Positions 1 through 38,035 of a DNA stretch of 64,000 nt are shown here, in pieces. The translations under genes were made by a program, and so were the position numbers. The notes under the pieces were generated by a model, which ran no database searches, was not told where the DNA came from, and worked only from the letters and a program-made list of their open reading frames with translations. This DNA is from Hydrolagus colliei (Eukaryota): contig CM068771.1 of the NCBI GenBank assembly GCA_035084275.1, positions 558,001 to 622,000 on the forward strand, written 5' to 3'. Position 1 is the first letter of the stretch. The number at the start of each line of letters is the position of its first letter.

Positions 1-314
1 GCCACCTGGCTCCAATGTAAATTAATGGTAGATCTGGCTGTACATCATCAAAGACACCCACTCCCTTAAATCCTGCTTCAACTCCAACACAATATGGAAT
101 ACTAAGGACAAGACCAGGATCTTTTACGTTACCATCTAGCTTCCCTGTCTACTCTTTCATGCCTCGCCCACTCGCTAATAAAAACAACCAGAAAGAAATA
201 ATGATTTCTTGGACACCCAAAACAACGAATAGCTTAACTGCCTTTGCACTTCAAAACACCTAGATTCAAGCCCATTGCGCCCTCACACATGGGGCCGTAT
301 CCATTCGTCACCAT

Positions 315-640
315 GGAGCTCCTGTGGCTCAGTGGTTAGAGCACTCATCTTACAATTGTAACACCTGTGTTCGAATCCAGGCATCTCAACGCGAAACCTA
401 AGGCAAGTTTCCTTGCTCCTAATCCCTAATAATACTCCCACCAAAAAAATACAATGTTAAAATTGATCATGTTATTCCACCATTTGTTTAACACTACTGT
501 GCGCAATTGGTTATTGTGTTTTGCACACAAACACAGTCAATTCACTTTACAGTATTTCTATGCAGCGCTTTAAGACCTCTTCCCAAAGAAGACGTAAAAA
601 GTACTACAACAAACTCAAGGATTATTATATTATATTATCT
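315..640 (+). mobile_element. tRNA-derived SINE with L2-type 3' region (paralog at ~28354-28680)
   Basis: A-box TGGCTCAGTGG and B-box GTTCGAATCC, Val-like TAC loop, then the body ctgtgcgcaattgg...aattcactttacagta...gcgcttt that recurs across the window. Confidence 0.75.
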
Positions 641-1299
641 TCATAGATTAAAATTCCTCTCTCACCAATATTACAACACACATGGAACAACCATCTCCTC
701 AGTCAACCCCTTCTTATCCGCTGCCATCTAGTCACAAAACAACACGAACATCACCCTGACCAATGCTCTGCTCTAATTAGGCTTCCCTGTGCCAACTCCG
801 TTCTTATTGGTCATTGTAACTCTCATCTCTGCAAGACGCAGATTATACAGTATTCTGCAATTTGTGTGTTTTGCCACTTGAAGCTCTGTGACCCAATTAG
901 CTCCAACCTCTCCTGCCTCCACTGCCTCCCATCTCCCACTGGATCTGTTAAATTACAAAACGTTGTTCCCAGGCTTTGGAACGTGCTGTAATTAAAAAGT
1001 TTAATTTCAGCATCCTATGGATCCTTTTTCTTAATTGTACAGTACATAAAACCTCAGATTGCTCAGATGTCTTAAGCTTTATTGAACATCAAAGATCTGC
1101 ATTGAGCGAAAGATATCTAACTTCACAAACTGGTTGTCAAACAATACCAGACATTTTCAAACAGCTTTTTATTCAGTGTAAAAGTTATTGTTTCAAAGAG
1201 ATACCGGGCCATTTAATAACCATCTAAGATAGCGCAGACCTGTGTGTGTGTGTAATGTTGTGTAGACCAACGAGAGCAGCCCAGCTAAACATGGTTGTG

Positions 1300-2189
1300 T
1301 TAATGTCCCTGTAAGCGAGTGATGGGATAAATGAAGATGGATTTCAGTCGCTGCCTGAATTGGGTCTGAGTCACACCATAGATGACGGTGTTGGAGCAGG
1401 AGCTGAGGTACTGCAGCATGTAACCCACGTGCTCAGCGATGGTGAAAGGGCTGCTGTAGTCAAACTGCATCAGTTTGGCCTCTGTGCTCCTTGCATAACA
1501 GAAGGTGACGAAGTAGGTGAGCCACAGCAACACAAATGTCCCCGAGATGGTAAAGAGCAGGATAATGGATTTCTTTCGACTCTCCATCTCCTTGTCCGTC
1601 CCCTTCACTGATCCACGCAGATGCTGACGCACAACGCTGGCCACTAGAACATGCCTGATGGTCAGAGAGTTGAAGAGGAGGATGACGATGAAGGGAAGAA
1701 TCGGATTTACAATCATATGAATAACGTAAAACGCCTTCCAGCCAATAGCAGATCTATAGCTGGGCTTGATGCTGCAGAACCAGGGGTGTCCATTGATCAT
1801 CATCAGCGGTTGGAACATAAAATAAAAGGGGATATTTTTTGCGCTTAAAAATGCACAGATTGTCCAGATCACCAGTCCCGCTATCCTCTCAGTGCAGTAT
1901 TGGGGTTTGAGCTTTGGGCAGCAGATGGCAATGAAGCGGTCAAAGGTGAAGGCCATGGTCAGCCAGACAGAGGTTTCCATGATGACCAGGCGCAGTGGAA
2001 GGTGCACTCGGCACACGGGGGTCCGGAAAAAGGGCGAGTACGACAGGTGGAGCTGAAATGTCTTCCTCAGAATCACACCAATGAATATGACCAGCAGATC
2101 AGCAACAGCCATTGCGACCAGATAGCGGGTGACACATTTGGAGAGTCCACACTTTCCCTGAGACAGGACCACAATGGTCACCACGATTG
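1300..2189 (-). CDS. G1 exon 2: class A orphan GPCR, GPR139/GPR142-like (TM1 end to C-terminus); full gene 317 aa
   Basis: Acceptor ttccaacag ends at 2190; phase-1 join gives GFP-A-IVVTIVVLSQGKCGLS. Motifs MAVADLL, FTFDRFIAICCP, WLTY, NTVIY; intact ORF to TAA. AATAAA at 1168-1173 (-). Confidence 0.93.
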
Positions 2190-2459
2190 CTGTTGGAAAG
2201 TCACAAAAACAATCATAGATTTCACTATCTCATGCCTGATTGTGCATGTAAGGTAATATCGCTAAGCCATTGACCTGCACGCAAATCAAGCCAGCGAATT
2301 TCGCTTCCAAGTGAGCTTTGTAACCATCTTTACTCTCTGTCCATCACCCCCTTCCTCTCCGGCTTTGCTTCAGAAATGCAATGACCACAATTCCCTCTGC
2401 CTGCACTTTGGATTGTGTTATCGAGCCTCCCCTATTTGAATGCATGTGGGCTGACAATG

Positions 2460-2900
2460 TCTCAGTGATTGCTCTTCTCCGAGTCTCAGATTGAGCCTGT
2501 GGCTGCAGCACCTGATGCAACCCCTAAAAATACTTTCCCTCTCCAACTCCCTGCACTGTGTTGCTCCAACTCAATCAATGTCTCCTACCAATTTCCACAT
2601 TTTCTCACCCAACTGTTCTCACAGCAGCCCTATGTTCCCTCCTTGGAATCCTCCACTGAACTGATTTTGGCAAATGCTGCTGGTTGTCCATCATCGACTC
2701 CCATCCTCAATGTCCTACACTTTCCTCTCCGAAATCTCCACCATCCCGTTTCCTTCTGCATGCTGATCTGAACTCGTCATAATCTTGGATGACTTTAACC
2801 ACAAATCTCTGGCATTCGGTCATCCTTGACACACTAGTCCCTGTCAACTCCCACACCAATACATACTGATACATGTAACCCTGTAACTCTACTCCCTCAA
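2460..2900 (+). mobile_element. Degraded L2 LINE endonuclease fragment in the G1 intron (homologs in the G2 and G3 introns)
   Basis: Translates to an ...LVIILDDFNH-like motif; the inverted homolog lies at ~15900-16620. Confidence 0.5.
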
Positions 2901-3299
2901 ATCTCAGATGCTGTCCGAATACAGTCCCATTTCAATGCTTCCTATTCTTTCCAAATTAATGGATTGGGATGTTGTTTGCCAACTTTACCTTTCCTCTCCT
3001 AGCTTTACCCTGCAACCACTTCAATTTGGGGTTTTGTATTGTTCCTAAAATAGAGTCAGCCCTGGTCAAGCTAAATAAAATGACAATCTGTGCAACTATG
3101 ACCATGGCCTGTCTCTGTCTCAAAATTCTTCTCAATCTCTGGGCTGCTTTCCATAACATTCACCAGTCTATTCTTCTTCACTCACCACTTCTGACCAGTT
3201 TATACCTGCCTACCTGCCTGCCTACCTGCTTGCCTGCCTGCCTAATTTCATTCAACTGGTTCAACTGGTAATGAGGAGTTTGAGATACAAATAACAATA

Positions 3300-3640
3300 G
3301 CAGTAATCCTTGCATTCATCAAAATATATCAAAGTGCTTCATGTAACATATTGTAAAGTGAATTGACTGTGAACATTTTGGGAGCAAAGTCAGAAGCCAA
3401 TTGACATAGAGTTGACACATCAAAATTTGTGGATTTAGTCAACAAATGCTTAGTGTGCTGTTAGTTGTGAAGGAAAGATTATACCCAGAGAAGCGATCCA
3501 CCAATCGACCTACAACTGGGTTCTTACCTACAAAGAGAAGATTGAGAAGTGAGTAAAATTTCTCAATGGTCTGCCTTGACTGGGAATCGATCCCAGGTCC
3601 TTCACTTGTGAGGAGTGTTCTAACCAGAGAGCGACAGGAC
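3300..3640 (-). mobile_element. tRNA-derived SINE
   Basis: Minus strand tcctgtcgctctctggttagaacactcctcacaagtgaaggacctgggatcgattcc head, followed by the SINE body and tail. Confidence 0.65.
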
Positions 3641-3815
3641 TTCACAACCCGCTCCTGCATCGCTCATTCTAAATACTCCTGGTTCTTTTTCAAAAGTAAT
3701 TCAATGTGGAACGTCAGATTACCTCCATTCGCCTTAGCTTACGATCCAGGACAGTGGCAGAGTGTGTGATCTTATCAATTATGAATTATTGTTGAATCTA
3801 TCAGAGAATCTAATG

Positions 3816-3993
3816 CAACTTTTAAAAGGGAATTAGATCTTTATTTAGGGAGAACAGGTCTATTAGGCTATGGGGAGCGGGCAGGGCAGTGGGATTGAAT
3901 CACTCTTTTCAAGGAGCCGGCACAGACTAGATGGGCCGAATGGCCTCCTTTTGTGCCGTAAACGTCTATGAATCTATGAATCTATGAATCTAT
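3816..3993 (+). mobile_element. 5'-truncated CR1 3' end (~178 bp), present only in duplication copy A
   Basis: Matches the 3' end of the CR1 at 9645-10605 and ends in (CTATGAAT)n. Absent at 31861-31885; the copy offset changes from 28061 to 27883. Confidence 0.9.
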
Positions 3994-4303
3994 AAACTCC
4001 GCTGCCAAATCGCAGCTTTTGTCTATTTGCCATTCACAGTACCTTGCGGAATATACAGATATGGTTCCTGAGAGAAGGAGACCAAAATTGGATATTGCGT
4101 TTCATGGTAAAATTCTATTTGGTGATGTTCCTTTATGCTGTCATTCACTTTCGTTCCTTAACTTGAAACTTGTCGTCCTCACATTGGTGAACAGAGAAGT
4201 TTACTTTCTAGGAAAAAGAAGCACCATTTTTGGGTGCACACTTGTTTGAGTGGAGGAATGGCACACACAGCTGTACACAACTGAACCACTTTCAACAACA
4301 TAC

Positions 4304-4367
4304 CAGGAAAGCCAATGATTCCCAACGTAGGGTAAAACACCTTTTCTATTTCTATTATTCCCATCAT
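4304..4367 (-). CDS. G1 exon 1 (MMGIIEIEKVFYPTLGIIGFP + phase-1 G)
   Basis: ATG at 4367, donor G|GTATGT at 4303. The 64 nt join in frame to exon 2 (954 nt total). Same exon in G2 and G3. Confidence 0.9.
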
Positions 4368-4447
4368 TGGCAAAGCTTTTCTGTTTTCTGCTGACACTGT
4401 TCCGCAGCTGAAGAATTTGAACCTACTCCCATCTGTTCAGAACTTTC

Positions 4448-4494
4448 CTTTTTATATCTGGGAGTCAGCTCTGAAGGGACTGTCATTGCGCAAG
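4448..4494 (-). promoter_or_regulatory. G1 core promoter: C/EBP site (TTGCGCAAT), GCTGACTC AP-1/MARE-like half site, TATAAAAAG
   Basis: Motifs read directly; TATA about 80 nt upstream of the ATG; same order and spacing in G2, G3 and the orphan copy. Confidence 0.7.
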
Positions 4495-5349
4495 TGATAA
4501 ATTAGCCGATCAACCAACTGTGACAAAGCAGCTCACGCCCTTCTGCACCAAATGCATCTTTTGTGAATAGTAAGGATAATCACACAAAAAAAAAAAGTGT
4601 ATTAAAACATTTTGGTCATGACTGTGCATTCGTGAATCCCATTTTTAAAAAATTAATCAATTTCAATCAATTGAAAAGAGAAAACAGATAGAGTTGTCTG
4701 TGTATAACAACGCTTTAACTTAGGACTGGTCTCCTAATTCAGAACTGTTGATAGAACGCTGCTGTGCACGATTAGCAGCCACATATTCCCCTAACAAATA
4801 TATGGTAAAGTGACTTTACAGTGAAGTCTGTGAAGTGTTTTGGTGAATGTCACCATGATGTAGGTCCTCTGGTTTGGCTCCCACAAGTGCCTCCATAACT
4901 TGGGCGGTGACCATATTTCCCTCCTCCATGGCTCTTACTACAGAGTAGAGTCAATACAGAAGTTCAGCAAGTTGGTTGACCTCAGATGTCCTTCACATCC
5001 TGCATTCATGCCAAGACTCACTCTACATTTCACCACCTCTGCAACATTCCTTGGCTCAGCTAGTGTCTTAAAAGACAGGCTGGAATGATTTTCATACAAT
5101 AAAACCAATAACAAAATATGAGGAAAGATAATTTGCAGCCTCGATCGCTGACAGGCCTCCGCTATTGTTCCACATATAGATGGCAGATCATGCAGTACAT
5201 TGCAGCCAAAGTCTTCTCCTGCACAGGACTCCATGAACCGATTAACACTTTATTCTCACCCGATTCCACTGGCTGCCCTATAAGCAACAACAGCAAACAC
5301 AACAACCACAAAATTACATTTTTTTTGTGGAGTATCGTTCAAATAGGGA

Positions 5350-5990
5350 GGACATCCCAATGCGTTGAACATTCAGGGCTCAGGGACATGAGCGTGTGTG
5401 GGTGGTTGGGGGCAGGATTGGGATGAGGTTGGGTAGAGAGGTAGAATGCTAACTGAAGGAATGGAAGAAAAGGAGTTTCCTCAGACAGGCCTTGAAAGAG
5501 GCAAGGGATGGAGGAGAGTGAATAGATTGTTGGAATGGAGTTCCAAAGGGGCAGAAAGACTGAAAACATGTCTACCAATGATAGGGTGTGTTGGGCAGGA
5601 GACATGGAGCAGGCTTGCTAAATGGAGGGAGTATACAGATTGTTAAAGAGTGAGTAGGTCAGAGAGGCAGGAGGCGGCAAGGCCATGGAGGGACTTGGGA
5701 GTGAAGAGAAGGATCTTGAATTTGATGGGGAGCCAGTGGATCCGGGTGAGTGTTGGGGTGATCCAGTAGTGGAGAATTGTGCGGGATAGGACAAGAGTGG
5801 CTGATTTTTGGGTGAATTGCAGCTTGTGGGGGATAACATTGGGATGGCCAACAAAGAGGGAGGTGACAAATATATGCGTATGTATTTCAGCAACCTGAGA
5901 GGCGAGGCAGTGATGGAGAAGGCCGATATTCCGAAGGTGGTGGAAGATGGTGTTACACATGCCATGGATATCTTACATTCAAACAAGACA
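5350..5990 (-). mobile_element. L2 LINE 3' fragment
   Basis: ORF 5643-5960 (HITPTL..IHWLPIKFKILL..KSLHGLAASCLSDLL) is typical of the L2 ORF2 C-terminus. Confidence 0.8.
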
Positions 5991-6549
5991 CGCAGGTTCC
6001 TGAAATGTTTGTTTAGGTGGAGTGTTCATCCATGGATGCTGATGCTGTTGATGCATGTTGGGCAGAGGCACTAACACGTGCCAATCAGTTAGGCCTCGGT
6101 TTGGCTGGCACTAAGCCGTAGAAAGTTGTTTTTCTTCCAGGATGCAATGTCGTTGATGCCGACGAATATGGCAAGAGCTGGTGCAGAGGCTGGAAGGGAA
6201 ACCACTCTTTCTGGAAACAAGCATCGTTTGCCTGACAAGATGCATTCATTAAGATGGGGGAATCTATTGGAGCGTTTCTGAGGGAACTGCCGTGATATAT
6301 TCATCTTTGCAACTGAGTTAATAAGCCAATACCAACTTGCTTTCAGAGTACGATGTTGCAAATCTTCACCAGTCTGCCCCATATAATTACTCTATAACAG
6401 GGTTTTGTTTGCAAGTCCAAAAAGAACCAAATGAAAAAAACTTCCTATCTGAGTAATAGTCCAAGGCCTGCTAATGAGCTGAGTGTGACTGACTTTTCTG
6501 TCATCAGCATTGCCATATGTTACTCATTCAATACTATCATGATATTATA

Positions 6550-7350
6550 TTAGATAAATGATAAAGTGATGTTACTGGAGTGCTTTACAATTGAAAATTT
6601 CAATGGTATAGCATCGGTAAAATTGGGAGAACTTGACAGGTAGGGAGTTAGACCCTAGGTGAGGTACAGAATCGGGGAGGGCGGAAAGCAGGGACAGTAG
6701 GAGGGTGGCTGAAGGCTTGTTCGAAATGGAGGATTTACCATTGAGTTCCGTCTTGCACGTGTTAAGGGAGCTAAGTGAGCAAATGAGGCAAAGGGGACGT
6801 GTACTCTGGTATGGAGGAAGGAATGCATAAGGGCCAGCATATGAGGGCAAGATTGTGGAGAGGCAATATATGGAATTGCAGAGGCAGTTAAGCTATCCCC
6901 TCAATTTTGGATTCGAGGAAGTCCAAGGTCTCCTTGCAGTTGGTGTTGGTGGAGTAAATGAGCGAGGCAAAGCATGGTAGGTGGAGAAGCTGGTTCGTAA
7001 TGGTGTAGAGCCTGGTGTAGTTCTTGCCTCCAAGATTTTGTTGGATTTGAAGGACTATTTAGTGGAGTATGAATATTGATGATGTCTAGCCAGACCTGGC
7101 AATTGACCATTAACTTAGGTTTTTAGCCAGGTGACATGCACCTGATTGTTGAAGGAGCAATGGATGCTAGTTTTCGAAGTTGAATTCTGTGAGGAGCAAG
7201 CAGTTTGAGAGGTGCAGGCGGTATGGGCGTCGAGGATGGTGAAGAACGTTTTTGGGTGTATTAATTGAGGAGGTGATATTATTACAACAGGAAGCCCAGA
7301 TGGGCAGGTATTCAACTGACTTGAAGATATTTTCCATGGATGTTAGGGGA
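6550..7350 (-). mobile_element. Degraded L2 ORF2 (EN-RT linker)
   Basis: Minus-strand translation gives LYTITNQLLHLP...CKETLDFLESKIEG, resembling the L2 linker. Confidence 0.5.
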
Positions 7351-8129
7351 TGGATGTCGTACCCCATATGACACAATGTACTATACAATAAACCATATAA
7401 TTTAAATCTATTCTATTTTCATTTGTTCCAAGTAGTCTAAATTTCCGAGTCTCTATAAGTTACTGTATGACATCTCAAGTTGTATTCCACGTGTTTGTGG
7501 TATCAAGGCTCTCCAAGACATTGTTATTTTCCAGTTATACACAGCATTTTATTTATGAATTAGAAGAAATAACGGAAGACAGAGAGATTAGTGGAATATA
7601 CAAAATATTGCAAAATATCAATAGATAAAGCTAACATATAAATTCTTCACAAGCATTGTAATAGAAATTCCAAATGCGGATTCAAGATGATTTGTAAACA
7701 CACCACAAAACGATGGACCATCGTTTTCTTGCTGAAGCTTCCTGCTGACCGAGGGTTGCTTAGAAATTTTCCTGTTTATATTATCATTGATTCTGATCCT
7801 CAGATTACTTAATTCCTTTAATTCCCATCTATGTATCTGGCATGGCATAGATGTTTATTATTTCTGGGGCAATCCACACTTCCTCCACCATCGCTTTTTG
7901 GTATGCTTTGACTAACTCTCTAAATAGATGAGAAGAATAAATGACCAGTGTGGCAGAGAATGCGGCTGAATATGCTTTTTCTTGTGGAGGTTAGAACACC
8001 TCACAGTTTTGGGAGGTAATTAGTTGTACTAAAAACATGAATGATCTGGATTGAGTGAATGATATCTAATCTACAAAATATTTTGAGAAATGATAACGCG
8101 ACATTCCAACTCGAACAATTACTATACAA

Positions 8130-9462
8130 TGTAGTATATGCACATAGATACCAACGGCATTGGTAGAATTGGCCCCGATGAATTGAGGAGGGAGTTTGAG
8201 GAAGGAGTTTCAAGAGGTGTGGTCAAAATTAAAGTAAAAATCATCGAAACTAGTGATATTGGGACGACTACCTGTGCCATATGACAATTGGTACAGGAAC
8301 AAAGAGATTAAGGACCTGAATGCACAGTTGAAAGAGTGGTGCGGAAATCAGGGGTTTCTTTTGATGCGCCATTGGCACGAGTTTTGGAGGAAAAGGGAGC
8401 TCTTCCACAGAGATGGGCTCCATTTCAATCGGGCTGAGTCAAATGTACTAGGCAAACAAATTAATGGGGAAGTAAACAGGAATTTAAACTAGGTAAGGTT
8501 GGGGGGTGGTGGGGGAGGGAATATAACTAGGAGAAATCATAAATTAGCATTAGAAAAAGTAAAGATGACAGCGCAGGATAGCATGCCAGATAATAAGGAT
8601 ATGTTAACTAGGGGTAAAAAGCTTGGCAAAGCAAATAGGGAATCAGAGATTAGGGGAAATGGTAGGAAATTAAAAATGTTATATCTGAATGCTGCGAAGC
8701 ATTCGGAATAAAACGGATGAATTAACGGCACAATTAGACACATATGGGTACGATTTAGTAGCCATCACTAAAACATGGCTACTGGGAGATCGAGGGTGGG
8801 AGTTAAATATCCCAGGGTTTTCAGTTTATAGAATGGATAGGCAATGTGGGAAACGAGGTGAGTGGGGGTTGAGGGGCGGGTGGTAGCCCTGTTAATTAGG
8901 GATGAAATAAAAGCAGTAGAGAGGAAGGATCTGAAATTCGATAACGAGGAGGTAGAGTCAATATAGTGAAAATAAAAACAATAAGGGGTAGAAAATATTA
9001 CTGGGAGTGGTTTACAGACCCCCAAATAGTGATCACAATATAGCACAAGATTTTAATCAAGATATCAGAGGAGCATGTAGGAAAGGTAAAGCAATAATAG
9101 TGGGTGATTTCAATCTTCACATAGATCGGGAAAACCAAATTGGGAAAAGTAGGTTACAGGAAGAGTTCATTGAGTGTATGAGAGATAGGAACCAACTAGG
9201 GGACAGGCCATCCTAGACCTTGTTTTGTGAAACAGAGCTAGTCGGCAATGTAGATTTTAAATCTCCTCTAGGGCAGAGTAATCACAACATGATTGAATTT
9301 TGTATTAAGTTAGAGAGGGATATAGTTAAATCTGAGGCAACTATTTTGAATTTAAATAAGGCTAATTTTGTAGGTATAAGGAAAGATCTGGGTAAAATAG
9401 ACTGGAGTATCAGTTTAGGAGGTAGAACAGTAGACCAACAGTGGCAAATATTTAATGATGTA
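8130..9462 (+). mobile_element. CR1 LINE internal/5' part: ORF1 SGNH-esterase region plus ORF2 endonuclease, frameshifted and 3' truncated
   Basis: HIDTNGIGR, LFHRDGLHFN (ORF1); RSIRNKTDEL, VYRPPNS, IIVGDFN, SNHNMIEF (APE endonuclease). Confidence 0.9.
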
Positions 9463-9644
9463 CAGTAAAAGCCCATTTATTCATCACCCTCGGGACCTGG
9501 CCAATGCCGGTTAAAGTGTGTGCCAGATATTTAGCCGAAAACATTAAAAAATATTAGGGAATGGGGAGCCAATGGAGCTGGGCAAGAGTGGAGAGTGATG
9601 TGGTCGTGGAGCTTGTTGTGGGTGAGGACATAAACTACAGAGTT
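9463..9644 (+). mobile_element. Terminal fragment of a Tc1/mariner (pogo/Tigger-like) DNA transposon
   Basis: TA followed by CAGTAAAAGCCCATTTAT(CCGGCAC) interrupts the CR1; the cleaner copy is at 37369. No second end was found. Confidence 0.55.
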
Positions 9645-10605
9645 TATTCATAGATTCATAGATTCATAGAATTTTACAGCACAAAAGGAGGCCATTCGGC
9701 CCATCTAGTCTGTGCCGGCTTTTTGAAAAGAACGATTCAATCCCACCGCCCCGCCCGCTCCCCATAGCCCAACAGACCTGTTCTCCCTAAATAAAGATCT
9801 AATTCCCCTTTAAAAGTTGTTATCGAATCAGCCTCCACCACCTTTTCAGGCAATGCATTGCAGATTCGAACAACTCGCTGAGTGAAAAAAATTCTCCTTA
9901 GCTCCCCTCTACTTCGCCTTGAAACTATTTTAAATCTGTGACCACGAGTCACAGATTCGCCTACGAGTGGAAATAGTTTTTCTCTATTTGCCCTGTCGAA
10001 ACCCCTCATGATCTTATAAACCTCTATTAGGTCTCCCTTCAATCTTCTCTGCTCCAGAGAGAATAACCCTAGCCTATCTAGCCTCTCCTCATAGCTGAAG
10101 TCCCTCAATCCTGGCACCATCCTAGTAAATCTTCGTTGTACCCTTTCCAATGTCTTCACATCCTTTCTGTAGTGTGGTGACCAGAATTGAACACAGTATT
10201 CCAGCTGAGGCCTCACCAAAGTCTTATAGAGGTTAGTCAGCACTTCCTGACTTTTGTATTCTATACCCCTATTTATAAAGCCTAGTATCCCGTATGCCTT
10301 TTTAGCAGCCTTGTCTACCTGTCCTGCCACCTTCAACGAGTCACTAACACAAATCCCCAGGTCTCTCTGTTCCTTCACACCATTTAAAATTGTACTATCA
10401 AGCCTATATTGCCGCCCACCATTTTTTCTCCCAAAATGCATCACCTCACACTTCTCTGCATTAAACTTCATCTGCCATGTGTCTGCCCACTTTACCAATT
10501 TATCTATATCCTCTTGCAGATGGCTACTATCCTCCTCACTATTTACTATTCTCCCTAACTTAGTGTCATCTGCAAACTTGGAAACTGTACTCCCTACACC
10601 CAAGA
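9645..10605 (-). mobile_element. Young 5'-truncated CR1 LINE (RT C-terminus, 3' UTR, (CTATGAAT)n tail)
   Basis: Uninterrupted 288 aa ORF 9737-10603 (SKFADDTKLG...RPQLEYCVQFWSP...); tail tagattcatagattcata at ~9650-9670. Confidence 0.95.
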
Positions 10606-11258: not shown

Positions 11259-11893
11259 CTAAATAAAATAAATCATATGTTACACAGGTTACACACACAC
11301 AGACTGCAGGCTACACACGTACACATAGACTACAGGCTATTCACACACACAAGACACAGACAGCAGGCCAGACACAGGCATTGCACACGATGTACAGGCT
11401 CCAGGCAGAGCTCAGGGTGACAGCCAGACAGTTACAGTCAATGTTCTGGTGTCAGTAACTCACGCTTGGCTGGGGTATAGCCAGGCTTCCCTCCTGCAAC
11501 TGAGAGACACAAGTCTTAGTGATGTCACTGACACACTCCCCCACACACACACACTCCCCACATTCACACTCCTCCCACACTCCCCACATACACACTCTCC
11601 CCCCACACACACACACCCTACACACACACACTCCCCATATGCACACTCCCCCCTACAGACCCCCCCCCCCACATACACACACACTCCCCACATAGACACT
11701 CCCCCCCTACACACACACACCCCCACACACACTCCCCACATACACACTACCCCCCTACACACACAGATCCCCACAGACACAATACCCTCACAGCCCACAC
11801 AAACACTCCCCCACCACCCACACACTCGTTCCTGCACACACACACACTCCTCCACCCCCCCCCCCACCCCCCACACACACATACACAGTTTAC

Positions 11894-12010
11894 CTTTCTT
11901 CTTGTAAATAATGAATCTTCCGACTTTGACCGTGGCCACCAGCAAAACACCAGAGACAACGGCAATAATGACGGTGGTCAGACCCCCCTCGTCTCCTCCA
12001 GCTGGTCCAG
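11894..12010 (-). pseudogene. MHC class I-like remnant 1: connecting peptide/TM exon
   Basis: cacag acceptor and G|GTAAAC donor, 117 nt phase 1-1; GPAGGDEGGLTTVIIAVVSGVLLVATVKVGRFIIYKKKG. Confidence 0.8.
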
Positions 12011-12081
12011 CTGTGAACACAGGAAGGTTACAGCTCCACCATCAGCACCCCCTCCCCTCAGGGTTAATCCTCTCACTACCG

Positions 12082-12230
12082 CCCTCACTCTCTCCCTCCT
12101 CACTCTCTCCCTCCTCACTCTCTCCCTCCTCACTCTCTCCCTCCTCACTCTCTCCCTCCTCACTCTCTCCCTCCTCACTCTGTCCCTCCTCACTCTCTCC
12201 CTCCTCACTCTGTCCCTCCTCACTCACTCT
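12082..12230. repeat. 15-bp minisatellite (CCTCACTCTCTCCCT)n, about 10 copies, intronic
   Basis: Direct reading; explains the spurious SEEGE and RRERV ORFs. Confidence 0.95.
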
Positions 12231-12490
12231 ATCCCCTCACTCTCTGTCTCTCCCTTCACTCTCTCTCCCCAATCACTATCTCTACCCAAATCACTCTCTC
12301 CTCACTCTGTGTCTCCCCCTCACTCTCTCCTCTCACTTCCCCTCACTCTGCCTCCCACTCACTATCTTTCCCGCTCACTATATCTCTCCCTCACTCGATT
12401 CCCATCACTCTCTCTCTCTCCCCACCTCACGTTCTCTCCCTAATAGAGACAGTGATGGGGAATAGGCAGTGAGAGTGAGTTCACACTTAC

Positions 12491-14398: not shown

Positions 14399-14462
14399 AT
14401 GATGGAAATAATAGAAATAGAAAAGGTGTTTTACCCTACGCTGGGAATCATTGGCTTTCCTG
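14399..14462 (+). CDS. G2 exon 1 (MMEIIEIEKVFYPTLGIIGFP + G)
   Basis: ATG at 14399, donor G|GTACGT at 14463. Confidence 0.9.
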
Positions 14463-17204: not shown

Positions 17205-18109
17205 CGATCGCGGTGACCATTGTGGTCCTGGCCCAAGGAAAGTGTGGACTCTCCAAATGTGTCACCCGCTACCTGGTCGCTATGGCTGTTGCTGATCTGC
17301 TGGTCATATTCATTGGTGTGATCCTGAGGAAGACATTTCAGCTCCACCTGCCGCACTTTGCTTTGTTCCAGACCCCCGTGTGCCGAGTACACATTGTGCT
17401 GCGCTTCATCGTCACTGAAGCCTCTGTCTGGCTGACCATGGCCTTCACCTTTGACCGCTTCATTGCCATCTGCTGCCCAAAGCTCAAAACCAAATACTGC
17501 ACTGAGAGGACAGCGGGCCTGGTGATCTGGACAATCTATGTACTTTTAAGCGCCAAAAATATCCCCATTTATTTTATGTACCAACCGCTGATGGTGATCA
17601 ATGGACAGCCCTGGTTCTGCAGCATCAAGCCCATCTGTGGAACCGCTATTGGCTGGAGGGTGTTTTCCTTTATTCATATGATTGTAAATCCAATACTTCC
17701 CTTCATCGTCATCCTCCTCTTCAACTCTCTGACCATCAGGCAGGTTCTCGTGGCCAGCGCTGTGCGCCAGCGTCTGCGGGGATCCGTGAAGGGGAGGGAC
17801 GAGGAGATGGAGAGTCGTCAGAAATCTCTTATCTTGCTCTTTACCATCTCGGGGACCTTTGTGTTGCTGTGGCTCACCTACTTGGTCACCTACATGTTTG
17901 CAGTGTTGACAAAGGCCAAACTCGATCAGTTTGACTACAGCAGCCCTTTCACCATCGCTGAGCATGTGGGTTACATGCTGCAGTTTCTCAGCTCCTGCTC
18001 CAACACCGTCATCTATGGTGTGACCCAGACCCAATTCAGGCAGAGCCTGAAATCCATCTTCATTTACCCCATCACTCACTTACTGAGGCACGAACATAAC
18101 CATGTGTAG
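17205..18109 (+). CDS. G2 exon 2: GPR139/GPR142-like GPCR; full gene 322 aa
   Basis: Acceptor ttcctgcag ends at 17204; join gives GFP-A-IAVTIVVLAQGKCG; intact 7TM ORF to TAG at 18109. Confidence 0.93.
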
Positions 18110-27690: not shown

Positions 27691-29338
27691 CTACACAACA
27701 ACTAGAAACAGACAATATTAAATGAAATGAAAAGAAAATAGATAAACTTTGGAGTTAATGTATGACCATTAGTTGCTATTGCTCATGTCTCATATTATTC
27801 AACCCAACTCAATCACCTACCTTCCCTGAAAAAGTATCTCCAAGTTGCGTTCGAGTCATCTGACTATCTCGGAATCTGGGATTCATCCACAATGATACAA
27901 ACTCCTCCATCGCTCTCCCCCACAACTCTCTGCTCACCACTCACAGTGACTTTTTTCAACACACTCTTCAAACTGCTTGACCTCACTAAAGGTAACCTAG
28001 TACACCAGCTACCTACTCTCATTCAAAATACAGGCACGTGCCACCTGGCTCCAATGAAAATTAATGGTAGATCTGGCTGTACATCATCAAAAACACCCAC
28101 CCCCTTAAATCCTGCTTCAACTCCAACACAATATGGAATACTAAAGACAAGACCAGGATCTTTTACGTTACCATCTAGCTTCCCTGTCTACACTTTCATG
28201 CCTCGCCCATTCGCTAATAAAAACAACCACTAAGAAATAATGATTTCTTGGACACCCAAAACAACGAATAGCTTAACTGCCTTTGCACTTCAAAACACCT
28301 ATATTCAAGCCCATCTCGCCCTCACACATGGGGCCGTATCCATTCGTCACCATGGAGCTCCTGTGGCTCAGTGGTTAGAGCACTCATCTTACAATTGTAA
28401 AACCTGTGTTCAAATCCAGGCATCTCAACGCGAAACCTTGGGCAAGTTTCCTTGCTCCTAATCCCTAATAATACTCCCACCAAAAAAATACAATGGTAAA
28501 ATTGATCATGTTATTCCACCATTTGTTTAACACTACTGTGCTCAATTGGTTATTGTGTTTTGCACACAAACACAGTCAATTCACTTTACAGTATTTCTAT
28601 GCAGCGCTTTAAGACCTCATCCCAAAGAAGACGTAAAAAGCACTACAACAAACTCAAGGATTATTATATTATATTATCTTCATAGATTAAAATTCCTCTC
28701 TCACCAATATTACAACACACATGGAACAACCATCTCCTCAGTCAACCCCTTCTTATCCGCTGCCATCTAGTCACAAAACAACACAAACATCACCCTGACC
28801 AATGTTCTGATCTAATTAGGCTTCCTTGTGCCAACTCCGTTCTTATTGGTCATTGTAATTCTCATCTCTGCAAGACGCAGATTATACAGTATTCTGCAAC
28901 TTGTGTGTTTTGCCACTTGAAGCTCTGTGACCCAATTAGCTCCAACCTCTCCTGCCTCCACTGCCTCCCATCTCCCACTGGATCTGTTAAATTACAGAAC
29001 GTTGTTCCCAGGCTTTGGAACGTGCTGTAATTAAAAAGTTTAATTTCAGCATCCTATGGATCCTTTTTCTTAATTGTACAGTACATAAAACCTCAGATTG
29101 CTCAGATGTCTTAAGCTTTATTGAACATCAAAGATCTGCATTGAGCGAAAGATATCTAACTTCACAAACTGGTTGTCAAACAATACCAGACATTTTCAAA
29201 CAGGTTTTTATTCAATGTAAAAGTTATTATTTCAAAGAGATACCGGGCCATTTACTAACCATCTAAGATAGCGCAGACCTGTGTGTGTGTGTAATGTTGT
29301 GTAGACCAACGAGAGCAGCCCAGCTAAACATGGTTGTG

Positions 29339-30228
29339 TTAATGTCCCAGTAAGTGTGTGATGGGATAAATGAAGATGGTTTTCAGTCGCTGCCTGAATT
29401 GGGTCTGGGTCACACCATAGATGACAGTGTTGGAGCAGGAGCTGAGGAACTGCAGCATGTAACCCACATGCTCAGCGATGGTGAAAGGGCTGCTGTAGTC
29501 AAACTGCATCAGTTTGGCCTCTGTCCTCATTGCATAAAAGCAGGTGACCAAGTAGGTGAGCCACAGCAACACAAATGTCCCCGAGATGGTAAAGAGCAGG
29601 ATAATGGATTTCTTTCGACTCTCCATCTCCTCGTCCCTCCCTTTCACTGATCCCCGCAGATGCTGACGCACAACGCTGGCCACTAGAACATGCCTGATGG
29701 TCAGAGAGTTGAAGAGGAGGATGACGATGAAGGGAAGAATCGGATTTACAATCATATGAATAAAGGAAAACACCTTCCAGCCAATAGCAGATCTATAGCT
29801 GGGCTTGACGCGGCAGAACCAGGGCTGCCCATTGATCATCATCAGCGGTTCGAACATAAAATAAAAGGGGATATTTTTTGTGCTTAGCAATGCACAGATT
29901 GTCCAGATCACCAGGCCCGCTGTCCTCTCAGTGCAGTATTTAGGTTTCAGCTTTGGGCAGCAGATGGCAATGAAGCGGTCGAAGGTGAAGGCCATGGTCA
30001 GCCAGACAGAGGATTCGATGATGATGATGTGCAGTACAAGGTGCACACGGCACACGGGGGTCTGGAACAAAGGCAAGTGCGGCAGGTGGACCTTAAATGT
30101 CTTCCTCAGGATCACAGCAATGAATATGACCAGCAGATCAGCAACAGCCATTGCGACCAGGTAGCGGGTGACACATTTGGAGAGTCCACACTTTCCCTGG
30201 GCCAGGACTACAATGGTCACCGCGATCG
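29339..30228 (-). CDS. G3 exon 2: GPR139/GPR142-like GPCR; full gene 317 aa
   Basis: Acceptor ttcctacag ends at 30229; intact 7TM ORF; AATAAA at 29207-29212 (-). Confidence 0.93.
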
Positions 30229-32186
30229 CTGTAGGAAAGTCACAAAAACAATCATAGATTTCACTATCTCATGCCTGATTGTGCATGTAAGGTAATATCG
30301 CTAAGCCATTGACCTGCACGCAAATCAAGCCAGCGAATTTCGCTTCCAAGTGAGCTTTGTAACCATCTTTACACTCTGTCCATCACATCCTTCCTCTCCG
30401 GCTTTGCTGCAGAAATGCCATGATCACAATTCCCTCTGCCTGCACTTTGGATTGTGTTATTGAACCTCCCCTGTTTCAATGCATGTTGGATGACAATGTC
30501 TCAGTGATTGCTCTTCTCCGAGTCTCAGATTGAGCCTGTGGCTGCAGCACCTGATGCAACCGCTAAAAATACTTTCCCTCTCCTACTCCCTGCACTGTGT
30601 TGCTCCAACTCAATCAATGTCTCCTACCAATTTCCACATTTTCTCACCCACCTGTACTCACAGCAGCCCTATGTTCCCTCCTTGGAATCCTCCACTGAAC
30701 TGATTTTGGCAAATGCTGCTGGTTGTCCATCATCGACTCCCACCCTCAATGTCCTACACTTTCCTCTCCGAAATCTCCACCATCCCGTTTCCTTCTGCAT
30801 GCTGCTCTGAACTCGTCATAATCTTGGATGACTTTAACCACAAATCTCTGGCATTCGGTCATCCTTGACACACTAGTCCCTGTCAACTCCCACACCAATA
30901 CATACTGACACATGTAACCCTGCAACTCTACTCCCTCAAATCTCAGATGCTGTCCGAATACAGTCCCATTTCAATGCTTCCTATTCTTTCCAAATTAATG
31001 GATTGTGATGTTGTTTCCCAACTTTACCTTTCCTCTCCCAGCTTTACCCTGCAACCACTTCAATTTGGGGTTTTGTATTGTTCCTAAAATAGAGTCAGCC
31101 CTGGAAAAGGTAAATAAAATGACAATCTGTGCAACTATGACCATGGCCTGTCTCTGTCTCAAAATTCTTCTCAATCTCTGGGCTGCTTTCCATAACATTC
31201 ACCAGTCTATTCTTCTTCACTCACCACTTCTGACCAATTTATACCTGCCTATCTGCCTGCCTACCTGCTTACCTGCCTGCCATATTTCATTCAACTGATT
31301 CAACTGGTAATGAGGAGTTTGAGATACAAATAACAATAGCAGTAATCCTTGCATTCATCAAAATATATCAAAGTGCTTCATGTAACATATTGTAAAGCGA
31401 ATTGACTGTGTACTTTTTTTGGGCAAAGTCAGAAGCCAATTGACATAGAGTTGACACGTCAAAATTTGTGTATTGAATGAACAACAACAACAAATTACAT
31501 TTACAAATTCTTGGTGTGCTGCTAGTTGTGAAGGAAAGATTATACCCAGAGAAGCGATCCACCAATCGACCAACAACCGGGTTCTTACCTACAAAGAGAA
31601 GATTGAGGAGTGAGGAAAATTTCTCAATGGTCTGCCTTGACTGGGAATCGATCCCAGGTCCTTCACTTGTGAGGGGTGTTCTAACCAGAAAGCGACCGGA
31701 CTTCACAACCTGTTCCTGCATCGCTCATTCTAAATACTCCTGGTTCTTTTTCAAAAGTAATTCAATGTGGAACGCCAGATTACCTCCATTCTCCTTAACT
31801 TACAATCCAGGACAGTGGCAGAGTGTGTGATCTTATCAATTATGAATTATTGTTGAATCTATCAGAGAATCTAATGGAACTCCGCTGCCAAATCGCAGCT
31901 TTTGTCTATTTGCCATTCACAGTACCTTGCGGAATATACAGATATGGATCCTGAGAGAAGGAGACCAAAATTGGATATTGCGTTTCATGGTATAATTCTA
32001 TTTGGTGATGTTCCTTTATGCTGTCATTCACTTTCTTTCCTTCACTTGAAACTTGTCGTCCTCTCACTGGTGAACAAAGAAGTTTACTTTCTAGGAAAAA
32101 TAAGCACCATTTTTGGGTGCACACTTGTTTGAGTGGAGGAATGGCACACACAGCTGTACACAACTGAACCTCTTTCAACAACATAC

Positions 32187-32250
32187 CAGGAAAGCCAATG
32201 ATTCCCAACGTAGGGTAAAACACCTTTTCTATTTCTATTATTCCCATCAT
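32187..32250 (-). CDS. G3 exon 1 (MMGIIEIEKVFYPTLGIIGFP + G)
   Basis: ATG at 32250, donor G|GTATGT at 32186. Confidence 0.9.
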
Positions 32251-32330
32251 TGGCAAAGCTTTTCTGTTTTCTGCTGACACTGTTCTGTAGCTAAAGAATT
32301 TGAACCTACTCCCATCTGTTCAGAACTTTC

Positions 32331-32377
32331 CTTTTTATATCTGGGAGTCAGCTCTGAAGGGACTGTCATTGCGCAAG
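32331..32377 (-). promoter_or_regulatory. G3 core promoter (TTGCGCAAT, GCTGACTC, TATAAAAAG)
   Basis: Same as the G1 promoter. Confidence 0.7.
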
Positions 32378-35300
32378 TGATAAATTATCCGATCAACCAA
32401 CTGTGACAAAGCAGCTCACGCCCTTCTGCACCAAATGCATCTTTTGTGAATAGTAAGGATAATTACACAACAAATAAAAGTGTATTAAAACATTTTGGTC
32501 ATGACTGTGCATTCGTGAATCCCATTTAAATTTTTAAAATCAATTTCAATCAATTGAAAAGAGAAAACAGATAGAGTTGTCTGTGTATAACAACGCTTTA
32601 ACTTAGGACTGGTCTCCTAATTCAGAACTGTTGATAGAACGCTGCTGTGCACAATTGGCAGCCACATATTCCCCTAACAAATATATGGTAAAGTGACTTT
32701 ACAGTGAAGTCTGTGAAGTGTTTTGGTGAATGTCACCATGATGTAGGTCCTCTGGTTTGGCTCCCACAAGTGCCTCCATACCTTGGGCGGTGACCATATT
32801 TCCCTCCTCCATGGCTTTTACTACAGAGTAGAGTCAATACAGAAGTTCAGCAAGTTGGTTGACCTCAGATGTTCTTCATATCCTGCATTCATGCCAAGAC
32901 TCACTCTACATTTCACCACCTCTGCAACACTCCTTGGCTCAGCCACTGTCTTAAAAGACAGGCTGGAATGATTTTCATACAATACAACCAATAACAAAAT
33001 ACGAGGACAGATAATTTGCAGCCTCGATCTCTGACAGGCCTCCGCTATTGTTCCACACATAGATGGCAGATCATGCAGTACATTGCAGCCGAAGTCTTCT
33101 CCTGCACAAGACTCCATGAACCGATTAACACTTTATTCTCACCCGATTCCACTGGCTGCCCTATAAGCAACAACAGCAAGCACAACAACCACAAAATTAC
33201 ATTTTTTTTGTGGAGTATCGTTCAAATAGGGAGGACATCCCAAAGCGTTCAACATTCAGGGTTCAGGAACATGAGCGTGTGTGGGTGGTTGGGGGCAGGA
33301 TTGGGATGAGGTTGGGTAGAGAGGTAGAATGCTAACTGAAGGAATGGAAGAAAAGGAGTTTCCTCAGACAGGCCTTGAAAGAGGCAAGAGATGGAAGAGA
33401 GTGAATAGATTGTTGGGATGGAGTTCCAAAGGGGCAGAAAGACTGAAAACATGTCTACCAATGATAGGGTGTGTTGGGCAGGAGACATGGAGCAGGCTTG
33501 CTAAATGGAGGGCGTATACAGATTGTTAAAGAGTGAGTAGGTCAGAGAGGCAGGAGGCGGCAAGGCCATGGAGGGACTTGGGAGTGAAGAGAAGGATCTT
33601 GAATTTGATGGGAAGCCAGTGGATCCCGGTGAGTGTTGGGGTGATCGAGTAGTGGAGAATTGTGCGGGATAGGACAAGAGTAGCAGATTTTTGGGTGAAT
33701 TGCAGCTTGTGGGGGATAGCATTGGGATGGCCAACAAAGAGGGAGTTGTCATAGTTGCTCCTAGAGTTGACAAATATATGTGTATGTATTTCAGCAACCT
33801 GAGAGGTGAGGCAGTGATGGAGAAGGCCGATATTCCGAAGGTGGTGGAAGATGGTGTTACACATGCCATGGATATGGGTTGATTGGGCATCTTACATTCA
33901 AACAAGACACGCAGGTTCCTGAAATGTTTGTTTAGGTGGAGTGTTCATCCATGGATGCTGATGCTGTTGATGCATGTTGGGCAGAGGCACTAACACGTGC
34001 CAATCAGTTAGGCCTCGGTTTGGCTGGCACTAAGCCGTAGAAAGTTGTTTTTCTTCCAGGATGCAATGTCGTTGATGCCGATGAATATGGCAAGAGCTGG
34101 TGCAGAGGCTGGAAGGGAAACCACTCTTTCTGGAAACAAGCATCGTTTGCCTGACAAGATGCATTCATTAAGATGGGGGAATCTATTGGAGCGTTTCTGA
34201 GGGAACTGCTGTGATATATTCATCTTTGCAACTGAGTTAATAAGCCAATACCAACTTGCTTTCAGAGTACGATGTTGCAAATCTTCACCAGTCTGCCCCA
34301 TATAATTACACTATAACAGGGTTTTGTTTGCAAGTCCAAAAAGAACCAAATGAAAAACAACTTCCTATCTGAGTAATAGTCCAAGGCCTGCTAATGAGCT
34401 GAGTGTGACTGACTTTTCTGTCATCAGCATTGCCATATGTTACTCATTCAATACTATCATGATATTATATTAGATAAATGATAAAGTGATGTTACTGGAG
34501 TGCTTTACAATTGAAAATTTCAATGGTATAGCACCGGTAAAATTGGGAGAACCTGACAGGTAGGGAGTTAGACCCTAGGTGAGGTACAGAATCGGGGAGG
34601 GCGGAAAGCAGGGACAGTAGGAGGGTGGCTGAAGGCTTGTTCGAAATGGAGGATTTACCATTGAGTTCCGTCTTGCACGTGTTAAGGGAGCTAAGTGAGC
34701 AAATGAGGCAAAGGGGACGTGTACTCTGGTATGGAGGAAGGAATGCATAAGGGCCAGCATATGAGGGCAAGATTGTGGAGAGGCAATATATGGAATTGCA
34801 GAGGCAGTTAAGCTATCCCCTCAATTTTGGATTCGAGGAAGTCCAAGGTCTCCTTGCAGTTGGTGTTGGTGGAGTAAATGAGCGAGGCAAAGCATGGTAG
34901 GTGGAGAAGCTGGTTCGTAATGGTGTAGAGCCTGGTGTAGTTCTTGCCTCCAAGATTTTGTTGGATTTGAAGGACTATTTAGTGGAGTATGAATATTGAT
35001 GATGTCTAGCCAGACCTGGCAATTGACCATTAACTTAGGTTTTTAGCCAGGTGACATGCACCTGATTGTTGAAGGAGCAATGGATGCTAGTTTTCGAAGT
35101 TGAATTCTGTGAGGAGCAAGCAGTTTGAGAGGTGCAGGCAGTATGAGCATCGAGGATGGTGAAGAACGTTTTTGGGTGTACTAATTGAGGAGTTGATATT
35201 ATTACAACAGGAAGCCCAAACGGGCACGTATTCAGCTGACTTGAAGATATTTTCCATGGATGTTAGGGGATGGATGTCGTACCCCATATGACACAATGTA

Positions 35301-36035
35301 CTATACAATAAACCATATAATTTAAATCTATTCTATTTTCATTTGTTCCAAGTAGTCTAAATTTCCGAGTCTCTATAAGTTACTGTATGACATCTCAAGT
35401 TGTATTCCACGTGTTTGTGGTATCCAGGCTCTCCAAGACATTGTTATTTTCCAGTTATACACAGCATTTTAGTTATGAATTAGAAGAAATAACGGAAGAC
35501 AGAGAGATTAGTGGAATATACATAATATTGCAAAATATCAATAGATAAAGCTAACATATAAATTCTTCACAAGCAGTTTGATAGAAATTCCAAAAGCGGA
35601 TTCAAGATGATTTGTAAACACACCACAAAACGATGGACCATCGTTTTCTTGCTGAAGCTTCCTGCTTAGAAATTTTCCTGTTTATATTATCATTGATTCT
35701 GATCCTCAGATTACTTAATTTCTTTAATTCCCATCTATGTATCTGGCATGGCATAGATGTTTATTATTTCTGGGGCAATCCACACTTCCTCCACCATCGC
35801 TTTTTGGTATGCTTTGACTAACTCTCTAAATAGATGAGAAGAATAAATGACCAGTGTGGCAGAGAATGCGGCTGAATATGCTTTTTCTTGTGGAGGTTAG
35901 AACACCTCACAGTTTTGGGAGGTAATTAGTTGTACTAAAAACATGAATGATCTGGATTGAGTGAATGATATCTAATCTACAAAATATTTTGAGAAATGAA
36001 AACGCGACATTCCAACTCGAACAATTACTATACAA

Positions 36036-37368
36036 TGTAGTATATGCACATAGATACCAACGGCATTGGTAGAATTGGCCACGATGAATTGAGGAGGGAG
36101 TTTGAGGAAGGCGTTTCAAGAGGTGTGGTCAAAATTAAAGTAAAAATCATCGAAACTAGTGATATTGGGACGACTACCTGTGCCATATGACAATTGGTAC
36201 AGGAACAAAGAGATTAAGGACCTGAATGCACAGCTGAAAGAGTGGTGCGGAAATCAGGGGTTTCTTTTGATGCGCCATTGGCACGAGTTTTGGAGGAAAA
36301 GGGAGCTCTTCCACAGAGATGGGCTCCATTTCAATCGGGCTGAGTCAAATGTACTAGGCAAACAAATTAATGGGGAAGTAAACAGGAATTTAAACTAGGT
36401 AAGGTTGGGGGGTGGTGGGGGAGGGAATATAACTAGGAGAAATCATAAATTAGCATTAGAAAAAGTAAAGATGACAGCGCAGGATAGCATGCCAGATAAT
36501 AAGGATATGTTAACTAGGGGTAAAAAGCTTGGCAAAGCAAATAGGGAATCAGAGATTAGGGGAAATGGTAGGAAATTAAAAATGTTATATCTGAATGCTG
36601 CGAAGCATTCGGAATAAAACGGATGAATTAAAGGCACAATTAGACACATATGGGTACGATTTAGTAGCCATCACTAAAACATGGTTACTGGGAGATCGAG
36701 GGTGGGAGTTAAATATCCCAGGGTTTTCAGTTTATAGAATGGATAGGCAATGTGGGAAACGAGGTGAGTAGGGGTTGGGGGGCGGGTGGTAGCCCTGTTA
36801 ATTAGGGATGAAATAAAAGCAGTAGAGAGGAAGGATCTGAAATTCGATAACGAGGAGGTAGAGCCAATATAGTGAAAATAAAAACAATAAGGGGTAGAAA
36901 ATATTACTGGGAGTGGTTTATAGACCCCCAAATAGTGATCACAATATAGCACAAGATTTTAATCAAGATATCAGAGGAGCATGTAGGAAAGGTAAAGCAA
37001 TAATAGTGGGTGATTTCAATCTTCACATAGATCGGGAAAACCAAATTGGGAAAAGTAGGTTACAGGAAGAGTTCATTGAGTGTATGAGAGATAGGAACCA
37101 ACTAGGGGACAGGCCATCCTAGACCTTGTTTTGTGAACCAGAGCTAGTTGGCAATGTAGATTTTAAAGCTCCTCTATGGCAGAGTATTCACAACATGATT
37201 GAATTTTGTATTAAGTTAGAGAGGGATATAGTTAAATCTGAGGCAACTGTTTTGAATTTAAATAAGGCTAATTTTGTAGGTATGAGGAAAGATCTGGGTG
37301 AAATAGACTGGAGTATCAGTTTAGGAGGTAGAACGGTGGACCAACAGTGGCAAATATTTAATGATGTA
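36036..37368 (+). mobile_element. CR1 ORF1/endonuclease fragment (duplicate of 8130-9462)
   Basis: Near-identical ORFs at 36159, 36405, 36913 and 37126. Confidence 0.9.
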
Positions 37369-37549
37369 CAGTAAAAGCCCATTTATCCGGCACCCTCGGG
37401 ACCTGGCCAATGCCGGTTAAAGCGCATGCCGGATATTCGGCCGAAAACATTTAAAAAATTAGGGAATGGGGAGCCAATGGAGCTGGGCAAGAGTGGAGAG
37501 TGATGTGGTCGTGGAGCTTGTTGTGGGTGAGGACATAAACTACAGAGTT
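37369..37549 (+). mobile_element. pogo/Tigger-like terminal fragment (duplicate of 9463-9644)
   Basis: TA|CAGTAAAAGCCCATTTATCCGGCACCCTCGGG. Confidence 0.55.
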
Positions 37550-37922: not shown

Positions 37923-38035
37923 CTGGACCAGTGGGAGGCCTGATAACCATCTTTATCGTGATCGCTGTTGTTGGGGTTTTGATGCTCCTCGCCCTGATAG
38001 GAGGAGGAGTTCATCTTTACACTAAAAAATTTAAA
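37923..38035 (+). pseudogene. MHC class I-like remnant 2: TM exon with degenerate donor
   Basis: Same upstream intron (aaccttcctgtgttcacag) as 12011-12080; GPVGGLITIFIVIAVVGVLMLLALIGGGVHLYTKK. No GT at the expected donor and no alpha3 exon upstream. Confidence 0.75.

Follow-up and report, generated by a model that had tools for sequence, protein, structure and literature searches.

Why should the coding exon of a recently duplicated receptor pair be more diverged than the non-coding DNA that surrounds it? The question is raised by a 64-kb stretch of the Hydrolagus colliei genome (64,000 nucleotides, hereafter the window), in which two receptor genes, G1 and G3, lie in the two copies of a direct segmental duplication. 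A first-pass annotation made from the sequence had reported such an excess for exon 2 of this pair and ascribed it to positive selection on the ligand pocket and/or gene conversion from another paralogue. Here we confirm that the exon is more diverged than its non-coding flanks, locate the excess within the exon, and weigh how it may have arisen.

Receptor genes and the segmental duplication

The window contains three intact two-exon genes for class A G protein-coupled receptors (GPCRs), G1, G2 and G3. G1 lies on the minus strand, with exon 1 at 4304..4367 (64 nt, or 21 codons and 1 nt) and exon 2 at 1300..2189, where the split codon is followed by 295 full codons and a stop, and where the acceptor ...CCAACAG/CA gives an in-frame splice to exon 1. 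G3 lies on the same strand, with exon 1 at 32187..32250 (64 nt) and exon 2, an open reading frame that matches PF00001 and splices in frame, at 29339..30228. The third gene, G2, is an older, inverted paralogue on the plus strand (exon 1 at 14399..14462, exon 2 at 17205..18109) and serves as an outgroup within the window. The reading frames of G1 and G3 are intact, their introns are of the GT-AG type, and the spliced products of G1, G3 and G2 measure 317, 317 and 323 aa. Exon 1 encodes the peptide MMGIIEIEKVFYPTLGIIGFP and ends in the phase-1 donor G/GTATG, which is joined to the acceptor CAG/C; the peptide had been described as identical in G1 and G3, and the identity in fact extends to every nucleotide of the exon, with two differences in G2.

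All three genes match the PF00001 (7tm_1) profile at E ~1e-22 (2e-23 for G1 exon 2), scoring 83.5 (G1), 77.5 (G3) and 86 bits (G2) against a cut-off of 30.5. They carry the class A residues D2.50, R3.50, C3.25, the ECL2 Cys, W4.50, P5.50, W6.48, N7.49 and Y7.53, and lack N1.50 (I in these genes), P6.50 (T) and P7.50 (T), with DRF in place of DRY, an unusual set of motifs for the class. The closest proteins are ‘probable GPR139’ entries of Callorhinchus milii (70–71% identity), followed among the matches by dozens of shark and ray paralogues at ~50% identity; ‘probable GPR139’ is the NCBI name that the chondrichthyan homologues carry. Among solved structures the best match is to human GPR139 chains (E = 1e-8), by a small margin over NTSR1 (1.4e-7). 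Cryo-EM structures of human GPR139 are available (7VUG-7VUJ, 9M42; PMC8807744), and an Arg at 6x51 is stated to be exclusive to GPR139 and GPR142 (PMC8807744); in our alignment Y225 stands opposite this hallmark residue, R244. The window genes resemble GPR139 in that the transmembrane (TM) anchors align, H5x43 and W6x48 are conserved and 7x50 is a non-proline in both, but they differ in that R6x51 is replaced by Y, E3x32 by R or H, and F at 7x50 by T, and, unlike human GPR139, they have two exons and belong to a large chondrichthyan expansion. Since the match to GPR139 reaches only E = 1e-8 and the hallmark R6x51 is a Tyr, similarity of sequence makes these genes ‘GPR139-like’ by nearest neighbour rather than GPR139 orthologues. 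Their family is a large, uncharacterised, chondrichthyan-specific GPR139-like expansion, in which the top matches include dozens of different proteins from each shark genome, and a literature search found no paper on it. In Heptranchias perlo two loci, one on a chromosome and one on an unplaced scaffold (L002, L003), specify an identical 325-aa GPR139-like protein (P0013); both are too distant for comparison with the window genes.

Self-BLAST of the window delimits the two copies of the direct duplication: copy A at 1..9644, its left end cut by the window edge, and copy B at 28040..37549. Positions 1-3820 align with 28040-31881 at 95.5% identity and positions 3977-9644 with 31854-37549 at 97.0%, so that the duplication measures at least 9.6 kb and its copies lie ~28 kb apart. 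A stretch of ~157 bp in copy A (3821-3976) is missing from copy B. G2 sits in an older inverted copy, the non-coding blocks of which are ~17% diverged and carry many indels. The window also holds a LINE reverse-transcriptase open reading frame (9737-10603, minus strand), a tRNA-derived SINE (310-400) and long low-complexity tracts (11400-12500 and 37400-39900), which yield spurious T-, H- and P-rich reading frames.

A divergent patch at the 5′ end of exon 2

The by-eye figures of the first-pass annotation hold up well on counting. It had put the difference between G1 and G3 at about 38 of some 296 exon-2 residues, and we count 38 among the 295 full codons; it had seen G3 agree with G2 at about 20 of these, and we find such agreement at 21 of the 38, against nine at which G1 agrees with G2. 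The clusters that it placed at ECL1/top of TM3, ECL2/TM5 and TM6/ECL3 are all visible in the difference map, the last of them at the upper end of TM6, and its estimate of a few percent for the flanks is close, the exon-2 reading frame differing at 58 of 885 positions (6.55%) and the flanks at 163 of 7253 (2.25%; Fisher p = 8e-11). The flanks themselves are of two kinds. Local flanks (1-1299 and 2195-5903) are 2.9% diverged and fit a homogeneous Poisson process (variance/mean 1.16), while the segment at 5904-9231 (aligned with 33780-37140) is only 0.97% diverged, significantly less than the 2.9% adjoining it (p = 3e-10) and with overdispersed differences, probably as a result of later homogenisation between the two copies.

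Exon 2 contains 55 codons that differ between G1 and G3, of which 17 are purely synonymous, and dN and dS are 0.061 and 0.095. Silent sites in the exon have thus diverged further than the non-coding flanks, an excess for which positive selection cannot account. Neither can the decay of CpG sites, except in part. When sites in CpG context are taken out, divergence is 2.51% in the local flanks, 3.01% in the exon at 1300-1875 (p = 0.47 against the flanks) and 8.65% at 1876-2194 (p = 5e-7). CpG decay therefore accounts for the modest excess at 1300-1875, where CpG content is doubled, and fails to account for that at 1876-2194. The excess is not exon-wide; it resides in one 319-bp patch, and two thirds of the exon lie at the neutral baseline. 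Scanned in windows of 470 bp, the 9.6-kb duplicate is most densely altered at 1725-2194, where 43 differences fall, a density equalled in none of 500 permutations. The second densest such window, with 29 differences, lies in the intron (3183-3652, with the most diverged part at ~3350-3650); this peak is due to misalignment around a 22-bp indel and to a SINE, and represents a different phenomenon.

The patch occupies 1876..2194 in G1 and 29915..30233 in G3, both on the minus strand, the two aligning without gaps at an offset of +28039. It comprises 5 bp of intron and then codons 1-104, which encode the end of TM1, ICL1, TM2, ECL1, TM3 and ICL2, and it contains 32 differences (10.0%). Maximum chi-square analysis places its breakpoints at 2208/2194 (p = 0.03) and 1876/1856 (p = 0.003). 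The 5′ edge, 5 bp upstream of the splice acceptor, is sharp: G1 and G3 agree at all ten variable sites between 2250 and 2208, and from 2194 on they differ at roughly half of them. The 3′ end is not, and falls somewhere between 1876 and ~1725. A stretch of 139 bp free of differences adjoins the patch (p = 0.018).

A patch confined to an exon in this way would also be mimicked by an assembly artefact, in which reads belonging to a different paralogue had been merged into one copy's consensus at the cross-mapping exon. We consider this very unlikely, as the reading frames and splice sites are intact in both copies, the patch stops within the exon, short of the whole cross-mapping region, and 319 bp would be spanned by long reads that reach into unique flanks.

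Ancestry of the patch

Silent sites indicate that the patch has a history of its own. Between G1 and G3, dS reaches 0.146 in the patch, compared with 0.066 for the remainder of the exon and a divergence of ~0.029 in the flanks; as dN in the patch is 0.089 (omega 0.61), silent sites there have been hit as much as replacement sites. The corresponding values of dS are 0.153 and 0.178 for G1 and G2, and 0.140 and 0.206 for G3 and G2, so that within the patch the three copies stand in a star-like relation (0.140-0.153), and G3 is more similar there to G2 (93.1% identity) than to G1 (90.5%). Of 47 four-fold degenerate sites in the patch, six differ between the two genes, where 2.9% would be expected (p = 0.002). 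As read from the alignment, CpG is involved in only two of the 11 silent differences. The silent excess is found in both lineages, with six and five changes against ~1.1-1.4 expected.

Trees and divergence ratios tell the same story. In the non-coding blocks common to the three copies the young pair differs by 3.5% and the old pairs by 17.3%, a ratio of 0.20, compared with 0.91 in the 5′ half of the exon (p = 6e-9). A local mutation hot spot is excluded by this HKA-like comparison with G2, because such a hot spot would have inflated the distance to G2 too, and G2 stands no more distant from the young pair in this segment than elsewhere. Three-taxon GY94 branch lengths for G1, G3 and G2 are 0.17, 0.125 and 0.175 in the 5′ half (codons 1-155, which hold the patch) and 0.10, 0.027 and 0.263 in the 3′ half. 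With the C. milii locus (L001, MU249860.1) as outgroup, four-taxon informative sites favour the grouping of G1 with G3 by 13:2 outside the patch and by only 1:4 inside it (p = 0.014). Derived sites common to G1 and G3 elsewhere in the exon are missing from the patch, significantly so if the patch evolves at an ordinary rate (p = 0.007) but not if it is generally slower-evolving, as its low divergence from C. milii suggests (p = 0.14). Site counts in the patch are small throughout, at ~75 silent and five informative sites.

The suggestion that the exon was altered by gene conversion from another paralogue is thus supported for its 5′ 319 bp by dS, by the switch of tree and by the ratio of 0.91, with the exception that G2, the one other paralogue in view, was not the source. 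Sites private to G2 are interleaved with the differences between G1 and G3, and the longest concordant runs, three sites for G2 with G3 (p = 0.91) and three for G2 with G1 (p = 0.34), are no longer than chance allows. Beyond G1, G2 and G3 the 64-kb window contains neither a donor nor any other patch-like fragment of the family, and weak tblastn matches at 2459-2710 proved on translation to resemble no receptor.

We therefore propose, at what we judge to be about even odds, that the patch was copied by gene conversion, after the duplication, from a member of the family that lies beyond the window. A recent direct segmental duplication would have given rise to G1 and G3 within a GPR139-like array, and the two would since have accumulated ~2.9% neutral divergence; as both flanks fit one Poisson rate, a single event must have spanned both sides, with the patch changing afterwards. 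In one of the two copies, somewhat more likely G1, the 5′-terminal ~320 bp of exon 2 would then have been overwritten by non-allelic (interlocus) conversion, the donor being presumably another member of the family beyond the window. That silent sites are as different as amino-acid sites makes overwriting from a family member the most likely origin of the patch. Such a tract would have carried in silent changes together with amino-acid changes at variable pocket positions (2x57, 2x66, ECL1, 3x32, 3x33 and 3x36), the rest of the exon sharing the history of the flanks. The older paralogues can be aligned with G1 and G3 only in the exon and ~55 bp of intron; heteroduplex would be possible only there, which would explain why the exon was hit and the flanks were spared.

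A quite different history would place G1 and G3 at nearly the age of G2, their flanks and most of the exon having been homogenised repeatedly while selection purged those conversions that erased the differences in TM2, ECL1 and TM3, so that linked silent sites stayed diverged and the patch survives as an island of divergence, as in the L/M opsins. Its premise, mutual homogenisation of G1 and G3, is real: the 139-bp identical stretch beside the patch and the overdispersed segment at 5904-9231, with its 0.97% divergence, indicate that the two genes do homogenise each other. Five of the seven pocket-equivalent differences (see below) lie inside the patch, and there is published precedent in gibbon L/M opsins (PMC3213168) and in GOT1 paralogues (PMC3728101). 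Against this, the flanks on both sides are equally diverged (2.9%, variance/mean 1.16) and the rest of the exon agrees with them, which would call for two homogenising events of the same age that halted on either side of 319 bp, where a duplication and one patch are simpler; moreover, duplicates so old should have had flanks in the state of those beside G2, where 17% divergence and numerous indels make for poor conversion substrates. We regard this history as unlikely.

The uniform flanks bear equally on the idea that unequal crossing-over joined two haplotypes of a single-copy gene that carried a long-standing balanced polymorphism where the pocket is encoded, in which case the patch would be a deep allelic coalescence fixed as two loci. 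Such a capture of alleles would account jointly for the contiguous duplication, the uniformity of the flanks and the narrow peak of silent and replacement changes on pocket codons. It appears decidedly improbable, however, as divergence in the patch reaches the level seen with an old paralogue and G3 groups there with G2, for which the polymorphism would have to be very old or conversion would again be needed.

Comparison with C. milii raises the further possibility that exchange involves the whole family. Four-fold divergence between the C. milii homologue and the window genes is 10-14% in codons 1-104 (window 1876-2187 against L001:10025-10336) and 31-35% in codons 105-295 (p = 0.004-0.04). 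The window's exon 1 shares 95% identity with L001:3022-3085; the public C. milii protein model (P0001) leaves this exon out and begins instead at an in-frame ATG within the intron. Within intron 1 of the C. milii gene, at L001:7790-8104, the segment that forms the patch recurs as an isolated copy, decayed and frame-shifted, which comprises the intron end and the first ~290 nt of exon 2. It is conceivable, if rather improbable in our view, that the first third of exon 2 (TM1 to TM3), perhaps with exon 1, is a cassette exchanged among all holocephalan members of the family, each gene possibly drawing its own from a common pool; such exchange would fit the finding that dS among the three copies in the patch (0.140-0.153) no longer tracks the age of the copies. 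At the protein level, nearest-neighbour concordance across 120 mostly elasmobranch homologues showed no special mosaicism of codons 1-104. The compression of silent divergence in these codons points either to constraint on silent sites or to family-wide exchange, and constraint alone could suffice. Were the cassette real, it would amount to a germ-line, template-driven shuffling of ligand-pocket halves, comparable to pseudo-V gene conversion.

The ligand pocket, known parallels and meaning for the family

The amino-acid changes are far from randomly placed, whatever their origin. Twenty-seven of the 38 lie in the ligand-facing, extracellular half of the receptor (p = 2e-4), where non-synonymous and synonymous differences number 27:6, compared with 11:11 in the intracellular half (p = 0.018). 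When sites are mapped by generic residue numbers through a HMMER alignment to GPR139, the TM positions equivalent to GPR139 contacts differ at seven of 18, against 31 of 277 other positions (p = 0.004); the seven are 2x57, 2x66, 3x32, 3x33, 3x36, 6x55 and 7x42. Differences between G1 and G3 also fall at sites that vary across the family (entropy 1.84 vs 1.07, p = 1e-6). Such enrichment in the pocket would be expected equally of a tract imported from a functional paralogue.

The claim of positive selection on the pocket does not survive these data, in that omega is nowhere significantly above 1 and selection would leave the excess of silent changes unaccounted for. For exon 2 as a whole, omega between G1 and G3 is 0.55, below 1 at p = 0.004 (~0.6 when taken from the dN and dS given above). 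In the extracellular half omega rises to 1.30, which a likelihood-ratio test does not separate from 1 (p = 0.42); it is 1.65 in codons 37-72 and 0.22 in the intracellular half. Branch estimates are 1.04 for G1, 0.33 for G3 and 0.46 for G2, with no significant heterogeneity among branches.

Two clusters outside the patch are nonetheless suggestive of adaptive change. The first, at the top of TM4, ECL2 and the top of TM5 (1725..1849, minus strand), has 11 differences, nine non-synonymous and two synonymous, and its informative sites still group G1 with G3 (3:1:0). The second, at the top of TM6 (1486..1510, minus strand), has five non-synonymous and no synonymous differences within 25 bp, at 6.52, 6.55, 6.56, 6.59 and 6.60; G2 differs here from both copies too, and dN/dS against G2 is 3-4 in codons 220-240. 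Outside the patch, replacements in the outer half number 14 where 7.5 are expected from the CpG-adjusted neutral rate (p = 0.02). G1 also carries replacements at near-invariant positions of the family (L53F, K96Q and T102I) in an intact reading frame, and may be relaxed or changing in function; as a last step of the history proposed above, its protein would have been evolving faster, at about the neutral rate (omega ~1), chiefly in the outward-facing half.

Could diversifying selection and/or local hypermutation, acting without recombination, have produced the entire pattern? The concentration of replacements in the extracellular half, the omega of codons 37-72, the wholly non-synonymous cluster at the top of TM6 and the outer-half replacement rate outside the patch are what such an explanation would lead one to expect, yet we hold it to be highly improbable. 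Omega is not significantly above 1 anywhere, including the extracellular half and the exon as a whole (0.55), and the five-fold rise at silent sites in both lineages is not a product of selection; since selection cannot raise silent sites, positive selection alone fails. A hot spot, for its part, should have inflated the distance to G2, which it has not, and the substitution spectrum of the patch is mixed and not strand-coordinated.

Gene conversion is known to have diversified olfactory-receptor clusters and to have acted between CCR2 and CCR5, and the interlocus conversion that we favour for the patch is a mechanism of a known kind, gene conversion diversifying receptor families, in a receptor family that is little studied. 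A close parallel is offered by the primate L/M opsins, GPCR genes likewise duplicated in tandem, whose coding exons have diverged beyond the non-coding DNA around them. Exon and intron trees disagree there too, and the accepted causes are gene conversion together with selection on sites that tune the response to ligand or chromophore. In gibbons the exons of these genes exceed the introns in divergence, since conversion acts in introns and is opposed by selection in exons (PMC3213168). In the opsins, however, introns are homogenised and whole exons protected, whereas in G1 and G3 the flanks look like those of one young duplication, the excess extends over 319 bp only and this exon segment looks newly imported. 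The GOT1 paralogues of Tigriopus, mosaic genes with islands of divergence formed by rare interlocus conversion (PMC3728101), resemble the present case in that a young copy becomes distinct at a stroke when it receives a diverged tract from a paralogue, leaving strongly and weakly diverged regions in alternation. They are unlike G1 and G3 in that the donor is here a putative one and the receptor family uncharacterised.

These results carry a caution and a prospect for the family. An exon more diverged than its flanks in a young duplicate should be checked for silent sites and CpG content before positive selection is called, and dating and dN/dS scans on the GPR139-like family will be biased unless recombination is modelled. 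If the patch was indeed acquired by conversion, it would provide a concrete, single-step route by which the TM2, ECL1 and TM3 half of a receptor's ligand pocket may change.
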